From assembly GCA_002269645.1 (NCBI GenBank), contig NIVC01000952.1:214967-278966 (forward strand): DNA of 64,000 nucleotides. The letters run 5' to 3'. The stretch is from Macrostomum lignano (lineage: Eukaryota). Shown here one piece after another: positions 31,906 to 43,900 of this stretch. The position numbers were made by a program, and so were the translations under genes. Under the pieces are notes generated by a model, which saw only the letters and a program-made list of their open reading frames with translations, did not search any database and was not told the DNA's origin. Each line of letters begins with the position of its first letter. Positions within the stretch are counted from its first letter, which is position 1.

Positions 31906-34900
31906 GCCGGGTCACGGGGCACCAGTCGCACCGGACTCTGCAGCACCACTTGAATCGGCAGTCGCATTTCTCCGCCGTGGTAAACAACCGAGATTCGAAC
32001 CCGCGACCGCAGCAGAGGCTCAGGCAGCTGTGCGGGCCGCCGTTGGGCCGGTCCAGCCAGCACCGCCGGCCCCGAGTGCCTGGCAGTCCCCGGTTCGAAT
32101 CCGGCAGGCAGTAGTCGGGCGACTCGGTCAGGAACACCAGGCCGGCGCCGTCGGGCTTCCGGCTGCCGCGTCGGCGACCCCGCAGGCGACGCAATTTGGT
32201 GCCGCGGCGGGCGTCAAGGCGGACGCGCTCGGCCGCGGTGTACAGAGTCAGCAGGCGGTCGCCTGTGCGGCTGAACTGGCCGAGCTGCTGCCAGCAGGTG
32301 CGCAGAGAGCAGCTGCCGGAGAGCCCGTGGCATTTGCAGGCCACCTCAGCGGCGTTGAACACGGCCTGCAGTGGGCGGCGGGGAGAGCTGGGTGGGTGGC
32401 CCGCTTGCCAGTGGCCTGCTCGGTGTGGGACTGGCTTGGGAGAGGACGTTGGACAGAGGAACAGTCTGTCAGGACACCAGTCTGTGAGGACACCAGTCTG
32501 TGAGGACACCAGTCTGTGAGGACACCAGTCTGTGAGGACATCAGTCTGTCAGGGGACCAGTCTGTCAGGGGACCAGTCTGTCAGGACACCAGTCTGTGAG
32601 GACACCAGTATGTCAGGACATCAGTCTGTCAGGGGACCAGTCTGTCAGGACACCAGTCTGTGAGGACACCAGTATGTCAGGACATCAGTCTGTCAGGACA
32701 CCAGTATGTCAGGACACCAGTCTGTGAGGACACCAGTCTGTGAGGACACCAGTCTGTGAGGACACCAGTCTGTGAGGACACCAGTCTGTGAGGACACCAG
32801 TCTGTGAGGACACCAGTCTGTGAGGACACCAGTCTGTCAGGACACCAGTCTGTCAGGACACCAGTCTGTCAGGACACCAGTCTGTCAGGACACCAGTCTG
32901 TCAGGACACCAGTCTGTCAGGACACCAGTATGTCAGGACACCAGTCTGTCAGGACACCAGTCTGTCAGGACACCAGTCTATCAGGGGACCAGTCTGTCAG
33001 GGGACCAGTCTATCAGGGGACCAGTCTGTCAGGGGACCAGTCTATCAGGGGACCAGTCTGTCAGGGGACCAGTCTATCAGGACACCAGTCTATCAGGACA
33101 CCAGTCTGTCAGGACACCAGTCTGTCAGGGGACCAGTCTGTCAGGACACCAGTCTGTCAGGACACCAGTCTGTCAGGACACCAGTCTGTCAGGACACCAG
33201 TCTGTCAGGACAGTAGTCTGTCAGGACACCAGTCTGTCAGGGGACCAGTCTGTGAGGACATCAGTCTGTCAGGACACCAGTCTGTCAGGCAGCCTACCCT
33301 CCTGCCGGCCTCATTATTGTGGAGGTTCATCAGCGCCCTGGCAAGACGGTCGCTCCGTCGCGGATGGCTGCCTTCAGTCTCGCGAGCGTCCACAAAAGTG
33401 CGCGCGAACGTGTAGCCAAACAGCAGGTCATCGCCGCAGCCGCCCCAGAGCCAGTCCCTGGGCAGGTTGTTCGGTCTCAGGGCCGTTGAGCAGCCGCAGG
33501 CGGCACCGGCTGGCCGACTGCCGTCCCGGCCGGCCTCGTCGCTGTCGACGGCGGCTTGGCGGCAGGCGCGGGCGACCGCGTGAGAAACACCGGCTGCCGT
33601 GATGGCGTGGGCGAAGGCGGCCTCCCGGGTCACTGCAGCGGGAGAAGTCGCGGTGCATGCGTTTGCAAATCGTGAGAGGTCGCCTTCTAGTGAGGGGTGC
33701 GCTGCCGCAATCATGTTGGGCTTGCGCAATAAAACTGGGTGTCACGCGATTCGCACCCGTGAGGGCCAACCTCCAGGGCTAAGAGAGGGTAGCCTGACGA
33801 TTAGAGATCCTTTTATTCTGGGTGTTTGAACCTCTACACCTGTATCATCTGGTACACCACACCATTCTACCGTACAGCTAATTCGCACGGCATCAGGGGC
33901 CATGCCCGTCTGCTTCAAACTTCTTAGTGACCATGCAAAGCTACCATTGCTGCTTTCAAAACCAAAATGGGGGTCCGTAGCCCAGTGGTCTAGCGCGGTG
34001 CTCTGATGGCTCGATTCCAAGTGCAGTCACACTAGTTTGAGACAAATTGGAATCTCGGTTTGGCTCTGCTCGTGCCCAGCTTGAGGGCCAACCCCCAAGG
34101 CACAGTGAAGTGTACATGCCTAACGATAAATAAAGTCAGGGCCGCTGTACATTACTGTGTGAGTGTGTGCCTGTGCGTATGACTGGCAGTAGTGTCTCTC
34201 GCCGGTTGAGTGACAATGTCACTTAAAGTGCACCAGGGTCGCCCACAGCGTATACTAACTCTAACAAAATAAACTGCCGCTTCCACAACAGGGGGCTCAA
34301 ATTTGCTAGTCTACTTACAATAATGCGTTCGTATTAAGTAATCAACGCACATAAGTATAACAAATTATTAGCAGTAAAAGGACAATAAAAAAGAATAAAA
34401 TATTGTCGTTTTGATACGCGTCATAAAATCAGAGGAGAATCACCTAAGTCTATCATGGGTATATTTGCGTCGCGGACATTGCAGCTTATCAGAAAGTGTC
34501 ATTGCCACAGTATTTTTACCAACAGCTTGAATCCATCCGATAACATTTGGTAGCCGGTGGGTTTCTCAGCACGTCCAGCTCGTACGAGTGAAGATGACGA
34601 ACATCCAGATGAGAATTGCCGACAAGTGAAGAGCTGGGCTGTGCTGACGAATAGCATCTTTGCTGTGCAGCCTCCACACCTCGGCCTGTTTGCTTTGCAC
34701 CAGATTCCAACCGGTCTGCACCCGGTACTCCGGCAGGCCGAATAGTCGAGCCTCGGACTTGGTCACTGAAGCGGAACATTCGAAGGACGCCTTCCACGAG
34801 ACCCACCAAGCCTCCTCCTTCTTGCTAGTGGCCCGAACTGTCAATGCGCTGCTTGAGTCGGTGCGGTTGCTGCTCAGCGCGATGCCCCTGGGGTCGCCGT

Positions 34901-40900: not shown

Positions 40901-43900
40901 CGAATTAAATTTTAGGGCAGCGCGTATTCACCAATAGCTGGTCAAATCTATGCTAAATTTTAGTTACAATCCGTCATAGAAAAACAATGGCTATTATAAG
41001 TGACTCATAAATGAACCTATCTTTTCAAAAATTAGCTAATTATGTGATAAGTAGAATCTCAAATTTCGTAAATTAGCTACCGATTGCAGTCTGATTCAAG
41101 ACTGATCCAAAAAAAGTTAGAGCACACACACCAAAGCATTTCGTAGGGTCCTTAACATGCAAAGCAGTCACTGAGAACAGTGCAGCTGACAGAGACAGAT
41201 AAAAGAACGAGCACTGCACACAGTCTCAGAGTAGATGGAGGCCCGCTAGTGGCGGCGGCGCGCTCCGTTTGCCTCAGGTCTTTAATGAAGGCCAGGCTCC
41301 ACGTCTCCTGCACCCGGTACTCCGGCAGGCCGAATAGTCGAGCCTCGGACTTGGTCACTGAAGCGGAACATTCGAAGGACGCCTTCCACGAGACCCACCA
41401 AGCCTCCTCCTTCTTGCTAGTGGCCCGAACTGTCAATGCGCTGCTTGAGTCGGTGCGGTTGCTGCTCAGCGCGATGCCCCTGGGGTCGCCGTCCAGCACG
41501 GAGATGCCGAAGTTGAGAGGAGAAACGCTGACCCAGTGCTGGCCAGGCTTGAACCTCTCGAGCAGGCGGAACCGGGGCACCAGCTCGACTGGCTCGATGC
41601 CGGAGTAGGTCACCGCGCAGCTCAGCGAGGCCGGCTCCGACTTCGGGTCGAAGTGCAGCGTCTCAGTGCTGACAGACTCGGCCGTGAACAAAGGCAGCGA
41701 GACCACTGACACGTGGTAGGTGTACTTGATGACCCCAGCAATAATGGTGTACTTTCCAGCGTGCATCTCGGAGGTCAAGCCGACCAGATCGATGTCGCAG
41801 GAGTTGGGCGACACCGAGAAGAACCTGGAGCACGGAGGTCGGCCAGCACGTCCGGCGTTTTCGGAGAAGGAGCCTTCATTGCTGCAGTGGCTGCCTTCGA
41901 AGCCGACTTTAAATCGCAAGTCATCGTTGCAAAACACCGGACACGACAGCGACATGCCGCGAAGGTGGGCGGGCAGCAGAATCCGCGAGGAAGTTTCGTC
42001 TGTAGGCAGGAAGCAGGTATAAGTAAATCTGCTTTTAGGTGACGGTGTTGTTTGGATTGGCTCGACTGTTTTCGGCTCAGGTGTAGTAGTTGTAGTTGCA
42101 GTGGTTGTCGTAGCTGGAAGTTCAGTTAAAGGGCGTGTTCTACGACTATTATTCGGTCTAATCCTAGAAAATGTTTCATATTTGGCAGCCTCTCACCATG
42201 TACATACGGCGCTGCTCGGGCTTCCCGCTCAGTTGATTCGACCAATGAGGAGGTGGCACCATCAATGTCGCTCAGCATCTCAGCATCTCGCTCCTCAAAA
42301 GCTGAACCAGGCGGTAAAGCAACCCGGCGACCTCGGGATTTATATTTAGATGGTGTAAAATCAACTGTCTTTACCAAGACAAAGGTTGAGAAATAGGACC
42401 AGATCCCGCCTTTGACGGAGATGCTCAGGCAGCTTTCAAAAATGCCTTGACGTTTCCTAAGCTGGTCAAGTATCACATTACGCGCCTCAAAAGTATATGT
42501 GAAGTGAAGCATGCCATTGTCAGGATTGAGTAAATAGTTCCTGAAGGCTTTGGTAGAGCTGGAGCTAACAGTTTTACCCACTCCAGCTGTGGCCACAACA
42601 ATTCGAGGTTCGCTGGGAACGCTGCAATTCCGGCTGTAGTAGAAGCTCAGGGAAAGCAGGTTGCGCACCATAGGCTCCGCCTGCTTCAGGACGCTGACGA
42701 GCTCACTACTAAGTATTTGGAGGCTGCTGTTCGATATTCTCCATTTAAAATTAACAGATGACACTACTTCAACGTTCTGATGGCGCAGATACTTTCTTCC
42801 ATTATATGTCGTAAATGCGTGGATTTCTATTTTCCTAGGCCCCCAATATCCTTCTACGATCCTATTAGGTAGCTTCGACAGCGCGTCAAAGTTGAAGACG
42901 AACAGGCTGGCGGACTCGAGCTCGCCCTGGTGAAAACTCAGTCTCAGTCTGAACTCCAGAGTGTGCCTGAGCGCTTGCTTAAACGGTACCTGGTTCTCCT
43001 GCGACAGAGTCAGGCGGTATATCGCATGGCTCACTCGCTCCAGCGTGAACGGCCTCAGTGGCCTGCAGTGTGTGCTACTCGGCACACCGGCATCCAGCAG
43101 AGCTTCATTGAACTTGGAGTCCGTGGACGAACACTTGAAGAGCAGTCGGACTGACTGCAGGCTCGCGTTGGCCCCCCTCGGGTCGGTGCGAAAATTGAGC
43201 GGCTGTCCCGCCATGAGCACGGAGACTTGCGGAGTGCCGCTGGGTCGCCAGTCCTCGCCAGACGGCAAGTAGTAAGTGGGCGCTTTGTGCGTCACGGACG
43301 GGTGCTGCAGCGCCGGCAGCAGGTCGCTCCTAGAGACAGTATAGGAGACGGCGTCCACGGCTGCTGCACTGATCAGAGGCAAGCAGACGAACAGGAAACG
43401 CAGCTCTGCGCGCATTTCCGAGAGAATTCAGTTTTGTAACTGATCGGATTTAAAAAAAATTAAGTTGTGCTTTTAGAGATCTGCAAAGTTTTTTAATCGG
43501 CTTTTAGCCGCAGCGGTTAGAAATCTCCCCTTGCCATAGAGTGGCTTTTGAGCGGCTGCATCTGATTTGCCTTAAGTAGCTTGATCAGATGTACTCGTTG
43601 TAGGTCATAGTACTCGTAATTGTTGTGTAGTGATTAAAAATATATAGATTTTGTTGAGCAGTACAAGCATTGGACTTATAGAATATTAATAGATTATTTT
43701 TTAGCTTCTCTTCCTTATATTCTACTGTCAGCAGAGAATCAGATAAATATACGATGTTTTGTGGCGGTTCAATAATACATGTATACTGGTGCGGTCCATA
43801 ACTCCATTTCAGGTGTGCGCTCAGGTGTCTCCGCTGTTACACTTTACCGTCTCCTGGCCTTAAAGTCTCCTTCCGGAGCCTGCAAGGCAGCAACCATTCT

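Follow-up and report, generated by a model that had tools for sequence, protein, structure and literature searches.

How two neighbouring genes can be almost identical in two stretches of DNA and share little between and around them is the question raised by a locus of the flatworm Macrostomum lignano. The genes, here called copy A and copy B, lie in the same orientation on the minus strand within a single Wnt intron of about 15 kb. They were studied in a window of 64,000 nt of contig NIVC01000952.1 (assembly GCA_002269645.1 / Mlig_3_7), to which all positions refer; window positions 31152-53415 were 100% identical to NIVC01000952.1. A preliminary description of the locus had proposed that recent conversion homogenises the framework of a surface protein while its exposed central domain diversifies. 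The first half of this proposal stood, on the evidence of a step in synonymous divergence, a runs test and five sites that group by contig, but the second half was not supported. A and B are very probably old tandem paralogues with two interlocus gene-conversion tracts.

The two genes were located by tblastn with the proteins P0003 (copy A) and P0004 (copy B):

34566-36541, minus strand: copy A gene, A-type, frameshifted as assembled
41152-43415, minus strand: copy B gene, Mlig012689g2, product P0004, 726 aa, intact
43415-42197, minus strand: copy B exon 1
42196-42114, minus strand: copy B intron, 83 nt, GT..AG, phase 1, following '...PYVH'
42113-41152, minus strand: copy B exon 2, stop codon included

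Across window positions 31152-53415, the annotation of NIVC01000952.1 calls no gene other than copy B. Both copies had been described as intronless and frameshifted, which holds for neither point in copy B: its apparent shift is the canonical 83-nt intron, and the spliced coding sequence (CDS) gave P0004 on translation with 726 of 726 residues identical. The frameshift of copy A was confirmed. Residues 1-520 of the intact P0003 matched frame -1 (514/520) and residues 521-658 matched frame -3 (138/138), the two segments meeting at 34982, and the frame is broken by a 1-bp deletion in a homopolymer (CCC versus CCCC) at about 34985. This deletion may be real, or else an assembly error, since the M. 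lignano assembly was built from PacBio data with Canu (PMC5730564). The intact A protein of 658 aa (P0003, Mlig015344g2) is encoded on the homeologous contig NIVC01000506.1. A third A copy (P0001, contig NIVC01001099.1) carries a 47-nt deletion that corresponds to window positions 34896-34942 (about position 6513 of the NIVC01001099.1 sequence used) and shortens the annotated P0001 to 533 aa. Should both lesions prove genuine, the A gene would be disabled in two of its three homeologues while both known B copies are intact, which would point to loss of A after genome duplication. The gene annotation rests on a transcriptome assembly, so that the models called for B and for the intact A point indirectly to transcription.

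Comparison of the two genes by blastn delimited one near-identical block towards the N-terminus of the encoded proteins (N block) and one towards the C-terminus (C block), separated by a divergent centre (D1 to D4 are the modelled domains described below):

36011-36457, minus strand: N block of copy A, domain D1, P0003 residues 29-177 (blastn; synonymous and nonsynonymous divergence)
42879-43325, minus strand: N block of copy B, P0004 residues 31-179 (blastn)
34716-35427, minus strand: C block of copy A, predicted immunoglobulin (Ig)-like domains D3-D4, TCFLPTD...EYRVQ (blastn)
41308-42020, minus strand: C block of copy B, P0004 residues 439-675 (blastn)
35470-36010, minus strand: divergent centre of copy A, domain D2, ending at RSKR, with 36% aa identity to B
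42021-42878, minus strand: divergent centre of copy B, D2 with RGRR at residue 361, and a B-specific Thr-rich linker, modelled as disordered, that holds the intron
35776-35833, partner 42629-42686, minus strand: short high-identity island, 11-protein-letter motif (blastn, 91.5% over 59 nt)

The N blocks were 97.8% identical over 447 nt, with 10 mismatches, and the C blocks 99.3% identical over 713 columns, with 4 mismatches and 1 gap, so that the coordinates and substitution counts first read by eye proved exact. When a five-sequence alignment was read per 100 columns, identity amounted to 0.92-1.00 in the blocks, fell to 0.06-0.67 in the centre and was 0.28-0.49 in the flanks and where signal peptide and tail are encoded. 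The abrupt block edges, the divergent yet alignable centre with its island of identity and the dissimilarity of signal peptides, tails and flanks, all noticed earlier, were thus borne out by the windowed alignment. The flanks and the intergenic DNA of A and B are unrelated. The best 40-nt window of the island (partner 42686-42647) reached 95% identity, compared with a permuted 99th percentile of 83%. The island is a micro-conversion tract or else a motif under strong constraint.

When 2,081 ungapped sites, of which 478 differ, were put to a Sawyer-type runs test, A and B shared identical runs of 384, 162 and 141 nt, as against a longest run of 59 nt in 10,000 permutations. The same partition appeared in the synonymous (dS) and nonsynonymous (dN) divergence of intact A and B, estimated by the Nei-Gojobori method. 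The N block gave dS 0.046 and dN 0.009 (dN/dS 0.19) and the C block dS 0.041 and dN 0.009 (dN/dS 0.23). For the centre (178 codons, 64 of 178 amino acids identical, i.e. 36%) the values were dS 1.54, dN 0.63 and dN/dS 0.41, and for the signal peptide dS 1.96, dN 1.71 and dN/dS 0.87; in the tail dN was 0.94, dS was saturated and dN/dS is undefined. The step in dS between the blocks and the remainder exceeds 30-fold, which excludes selection at the protein level as its cause and indicates a difference in age instead. Synonymous sites are saturated outside both blocks, and A and B are old tandem paralogues.

The relative age of the two blocks could be read from other copies of the locus. The same two-gene arrangement was found on the homeologous contigs NIVC01000506.1 and NIVC01001099.1 at about 98.6-98.7% identity. 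This matches the three subgenome copies (S, L1 and L2) reported for this assembly, with 1.4-2.4% single-nucleotide polymorphism (SNP) divergence and mainly large insertions and deletions between them (PMC10733133). In the C block, five sites (35261, 35210, 35207, 35111 and 35099) showed the pattern 0011, i.e. grouped by contig: A and B of contig 952 shared one state, and A and B of contig 506 together with A of contig 1099 the other. Just one C-block site split A from B across contigs. Because the five sites group by contig, the conversion is later than the subgenome split, and the C block was converted after subgenome divergence at minimum over the following tract:

35099-35261, partner in B 41692-41854, minus strand: minimal conversion tract later than the subgenome split, in the C block (site patterns)

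In the N block, six sites distinguished A from B on both contigs, and no site grouped by contig. Grouping by paralogue points to an older event, and the N block was therefore homogenised earlier, and patchily. Five of the six fixed differences fall in a 30-bp patch at 36185-36214 (partner 43053-43082), which was either spared by conversion or restored through mismatch repair.

The proteins were then placed by searches and structure prediction. Neither A nor B had a Pfam match, Ig and fibronectin type III (FnIII) domains included, or a sequence match in the PDB. A single-sequence HMMER search, run exhaustively over 1.84 billion representatives, returned seven further clusters, all from M. lignano: the short forms P0007 and P0010 and the long forms P0008, P0009, P0011, P0012 and P0013, of about 900 aa. 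A and B align with these over their full length, the centre included. The orphan status first assigned to the pair thus holds with respect to Pfam and PDB sequence matches, but not within M. lignano, where there are seven more distant paralogue clusters. No homologue outside M. lignano was found by single-sequence HMMER, and this search is the sole basis for calling the family Macrostomum-restricted; word-indexed searches with a profile and, separately, with P0009 gave the self clusters alone and have no bearing on other species. The gene identifiers were sought in the literature and its supplements, and nothing was found. Long-form members also occur as adjacent pairs with consecutive accessions on one contig (P0009/P0019, P0020/P0021, P0028/P0012 and P0027/P0030). 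Tandem pairing seems typical of the family, and conversion tracts seem confined to A/B.

The UniRef names attached to five members with A0A1I8... entries, P0006, P0007, P0014, P0032 and P0033 (Macrophage-expressed gene 1, EGF-like, RNA helicase, NRXN3 and protein kinase), are at odds with the sequences and probably stem from fused gene models or propagated names. The first of these names, that of P0006, was followed up, and no MACPF domain was found by Pfam, no match by PDB sequence search and no MACPF structure among the top 50 Foldseek hits. The name looks like an annotation artefact, because the sibling names from the same source (RNA helicase, NRXN3, protein kinase) are equally inconsistent. 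A and B have in common with MPEG1/perforin-2 only their length (about 710-726 aa), the signal peptide and the C-terminal hydrophobic segment; unlike it, they have no MACPF domain by sequence profile or by fold.

An AlphaFold2 (AF2) model of B, built on a family alignment of 13 sequences, had a predicted template modelling (pTM) score of 0.64 and showed four mainly beta domains: D1 (about residues 55-175), D2 (about 184-352, with helical insertions), D3 (about 448-550) and D4 (about 569-682). Residues 357-437 were modelled as a disordered Thr-rich linker. Compared with the PDB by Foldseek, the B model matched multi-Ig ectodomains (contactin-2, DCC, VEGFR-3, Robo2, RAGE and protocadherins). A separate model of D1-D2 (pTM 0.69) gave only generic two-domain Ig-like matches, among them a single-chain variable fragment (scFv), nectin-1 and the T-cell receptor (TCR), with TM scores of 0.20-0.28. 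For the AF2 models taken together, E-values were 1e-5 to 4e-9 for contactin, DCC, VEGFR, RAGE, nectin and antigen-binding fragment (Fab) structures. The ectodomain of A and B is thus predicted to consist of Ig-like beta-sandwich modules. The block edges lie near the modelled domain borders, the N block corresponding roughly to D1 and the C block to D3-D4.

Both proteins carry a signal-like segment at the N-terminus and 3-4 N-glycosylation sequons. Their extreme C-terminus is hydrophobic (residues 635-654 of A and 699-724 of B); small residues precede this segment and no cytoplasmic tail follows it. Such a hydrophobic end suggests a glycosylphosphatidylinositol (GPI) anchor or a tail-less membrane anchor. 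An aligned R-X-K/R-R site stands at the border of D2 and the linker (RSKR at residue 354 of A, RGRR at residue 361 of B). Of the furin-like sites listed in the preliminary description these two are therefore present and aligned, but the third, RRTR, falls inside the intron in a non-coding frame. The long paralogues have an additional ectodomain and a transmembrane segment, to which P0008 and P0009 add a Bravo_FIGEY tail (L1/neurofascin/NrCAM) above the Pfam threshold; their Ig_2 and Ig_3 matches were sub-threshold only, at 20.4 bits against a cut-off of 27.

A row of Ig-like domains in the modelled ectodomain, with contactin-2 and nectin-1 among the structural matches, likens A and B to the L1, neurofascin and contactin proteins, and a likely anchored short form beside transmembrane long forms resembles contactin beside L1. 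The short forms are probably lipid-anchored. Unlike L1, neurofascin and contactin, A and B have four domains and not six Ig plus FnIII domains, D2 has helical insertions, and a cytoplasmic tail is lacking. The Bravo_FIGEY domain of L1, neurofascin and NrCAM, found in the long paralogues P0008 and P0009 only, is absent from A and B. The pair may function in adhesion.

According to the models, A and B would be secreted or membrane-attached glycoproteins with four Ig-like beta-sandwich domains, arranged as signal peptide, D1, D2, dibasic site of proprotein-convertase type, linker, D3, D4 and short hydrophobic tail. Non-allelic conversion, in which breaks are repaired without crossover on the template of the neighbour about 6.6-6.9 kb away, very probably overwrote two stretches. 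The first and older one is D1 (447 bp), with the 30-bp patch inside it presumably spared; the second is D3-D4 (713 bp), where conversion of some or all of the stretch came later than the divergence of the three subgenome copies. The original old divergence would persist in D2, the flanks, the tail and the signal peptide. Homology requirements and mismatch-repair anti-recombination limit conversion tracts. The sharp edges may reflect a halt of heteroduplex extension where identity collapses, a process that would reinforce itself and keep the edges fixed, and selection keeping D2 distinct may contribute to them.

Classic cases of interlocus conversion are the human gamma-globin genes HBG1/HBG2, RHD/RHCE and the red/green opsin genes. 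As in known conversion between tandem paralogues, A and B show sharp-edged tracts of near-identity in divergent duplicates, homogenised synonymous sites and unrelated flanks, and paralogues on the same chromosome copy are closer to each other than to their orthologous or homeologous counterparts. Unlike the classic cases, the A/B pair resides in a neopolyploid flatworm whose three subgenome copies allow conversion to be dated against the subgenome split, it is nested in a Wnt intron, and its two tracts of different age surround an unconverted domain. The locus is thus a clean and datable instance of non-allelic conversion in a neopolyploid animal, with the three subgenome copies as internal clock, and it illustrates that conversion tracts can pass for constant frameworks around a hypervariable core. 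It adds a new example of a well-known process and opens no new class of system. It also defines an uncharacterised Macrostomum-restricted family of Ig-like surface proteins of possible interest for flatworm adhesion or neural patterning.

Several points weigh against this account or its parts. The five concerted sites depend on one pair of contigs and a third A copy, and 36% of scaffold length in this assembly has been reported as chimeric between subgenomes (PMC10733133). A local subgenome switch could blur the distinction between grouping by contig and grouping by paralogue; it is unable to produce the blocks themselves. The direction and number of the conversion events would take an outgroup species to polarise. 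In the centre dS is near saturation, which makes the dN/dS of 0.41 imprecise and leaves room for a few positively selected sites. Confidence in the AF2 models is moderate (pTM 0.64-0.69, built from 10-13 sequences), and the GPI-type anchor and the convertase cleavage are features that we infer.

Of the other explanations, one shares the conversion tracts and differs in the role given to selection: D2 would be shielded from homogenisation, D1 and D3-D4 would be free to convert, and A and B would form a functionally differentiated, contactin-like pair. This has a small chance of being correct. If true, A and B would present two binding specificities on a common scaffold, released or activated by convertase cleavage at the dibasic site between D2 and the linker, and, as short forms with a GPI-type tail, would partner the L1-like long ones in an adhesion system specific to flatworms.

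The proposal that A and B belong to a variable recognition family, of allorecognition, immune, gamete or toxin type, goes further and holds that conversion keeps the framework while the central domain is under positive selection. The constant-divergent-constant layout and the surface-protein features that suggested it are real, and block edges roughly at modelled domain borders are compatible with selection protecting D2. The central domain itself gave little sign of diversification. Its dN/dS, at 0.41, is not above 1. Between homeologous contigs the C block differs by 1.12% and 1.40%, the central domain by only 0.51% (A) and 1.05% (B). In the family alignment it is a conserved structural domain in which C264, G301, L303, C329, S333 and Y341 are invariant. 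The A/B subfamily has two genes per subgenome copy and no further members that share the framework, and the 22-60% identity of the A and B centres equals the baseline of other paralogue pairs in the family. Four other adjacent family pairs showed uniform identity of 25-70% per 40-aa window without near-identical blocks, and several non-adjacent pairs were likewise uniform. As the centre stands at the divergence usual for the family, it is the two blocks that are the anomaly, and the centre is ordinary. Uniform divergence without a hypervariable core, which the preliminary description had itself named as evidence against its proposal, is essentially what the other pairs display. The variable-family explanation is improbable and largely refuted, and a diversifying central domain goes with it.

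Equally improbable is that a recent tandem duplication was followed by replacement of the centre and both ends (5' and 3') of one copy from a divergent donor. Such cassette replacement would likewise leave near-identical blocks beside divergent segments, and the family offers many divergent members as potential donors. It needs, however, three replaced segments besides unrelated flanks and intergenic DNA, where conversion needs two tracts. Moreover, the A and B clusters were the only ones found, with no third A/B-like sequence at 50-90% identity to either centre, and the remaining family members were at most about 32% identical. The A and B centres are each other's closest relatives (36% of amino acids, with a shared and aligned dibasic site).

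That the blocks are chimeras of collapsed reads from different loci of a polyploid assembly was a reasonable concern for a PacBio/Canu product with three subgenome copies about 98% identical and the 36% of chimeric scaffold length given above. It is now very improbable. The blocks are not the same sequence (10 and 4 substitutions), and two independent contigs agree in the six N-block differences that separate A from B. The entire mosaic is seen on each of contigs 952, 506 and 1099, and its proteins are reproduced by gene models based on transcripts.

A retrotransposon remnant lies between the two genes:

38054-39895, plus strand: long terminal repeat (LTR)-retrotransposon pol fragment with protease, reverse transcriptase (RT) and RNase H (Pfam RVT_1, RT_RNaseH)

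The idea that A and B are env genes of endogenous retrovirus-like elements, to which this RT/RNase H open reading frame (ORF) and a superficially env-like combination of signal peptide, R-X-K/R-R site and C-terminal hydrophobic segment lend some appearance, is refuted for practical purposes and has next to no likelihood, since the RT fragment is on the opposite strand and absent from a homeologous locus that keeps A and B, a spliceosomal intron interrupts copy B, the related proteins are of the cellular membrane type and carry L1-type tails, the predicted fold is Ig-like and unlike that of a fusion glycoprotein, and A and B, unlike retroviral or errantiviral env, are not part of a same-strand, LTR-bounded gag-pol-env unit.

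The pol fragment found no match in the A-B intergenic region of contig 506 and does not belong to the gene pair. The A-B intergenic DNA (37775-40014) differs in structure between the two contigs, with a 2.2-kb LTR-retrotransposon pol fragment here and 6.6 kb of unrelated low-complexity sequence on contig 506 (positions 2149-8764 of the sequence used).

The nesting of the pair in a Wnt gene was upheld by three exons with matches to the Pfam wnt profile, which bracket or follow the pair on the minus strand; the upstream one was located by a minus-strand ORF scan and then by Pfam:

48751-48882, minus strand: upstream Wnt exon, on the 5' side of the host intron (wnt profile positions 2-45)
33295-33636, minus strand: next Wnt exon, on the 3' side of the host intron (wnt profile positions 60-152)
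31889-32368, minus strand: further Wnt exon (wnt profile positions 151-305)

Between 10 and 58 kb the window is extraordinarily dense in long tandem arrays, with periods of 4-63 nt and up to 384 copies. An array of 16-nt units (32462-33289) occupies nearly the whole intron between the last two Wnt exons, and one of 47-nt units (47941-48697) starts about 50 nt downstream of the upstream Wnt exon. Other examples are found at 49594-52361, 25295-26824, 28037-28819 and 29623-30741. Upstream of the Wnt gene there are two exons of a Forkhead domain on the minus strand, at 55840-55929 and 54865-54954 (Pfam Forkhead positions 4-31 and 48-78), which look FoxO-like from the surrounding text '...SSYWTIDYG...'.

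Both ends of the window are low in GC, and no relationship was found when the two were compared. The right-hand stretch (58250-64000, about 23-36% GC) is without long ORFs and contains a 178-nt tandem repeat at 59163-59686. The left-hand stretch (1262-9509, about 33% GC) is tightly packed with ATG-start ORFs on both strands, and GC content rises to about 50% to the right of it, from about 10.7 kb. Among its ORFs are a Pox_A32-like packaging ATPase (4297-5097, minus strand) and an rve integrase (8322-9509, plus strand), and the stretch looks like one end of a Polinton/Maverick-type element.

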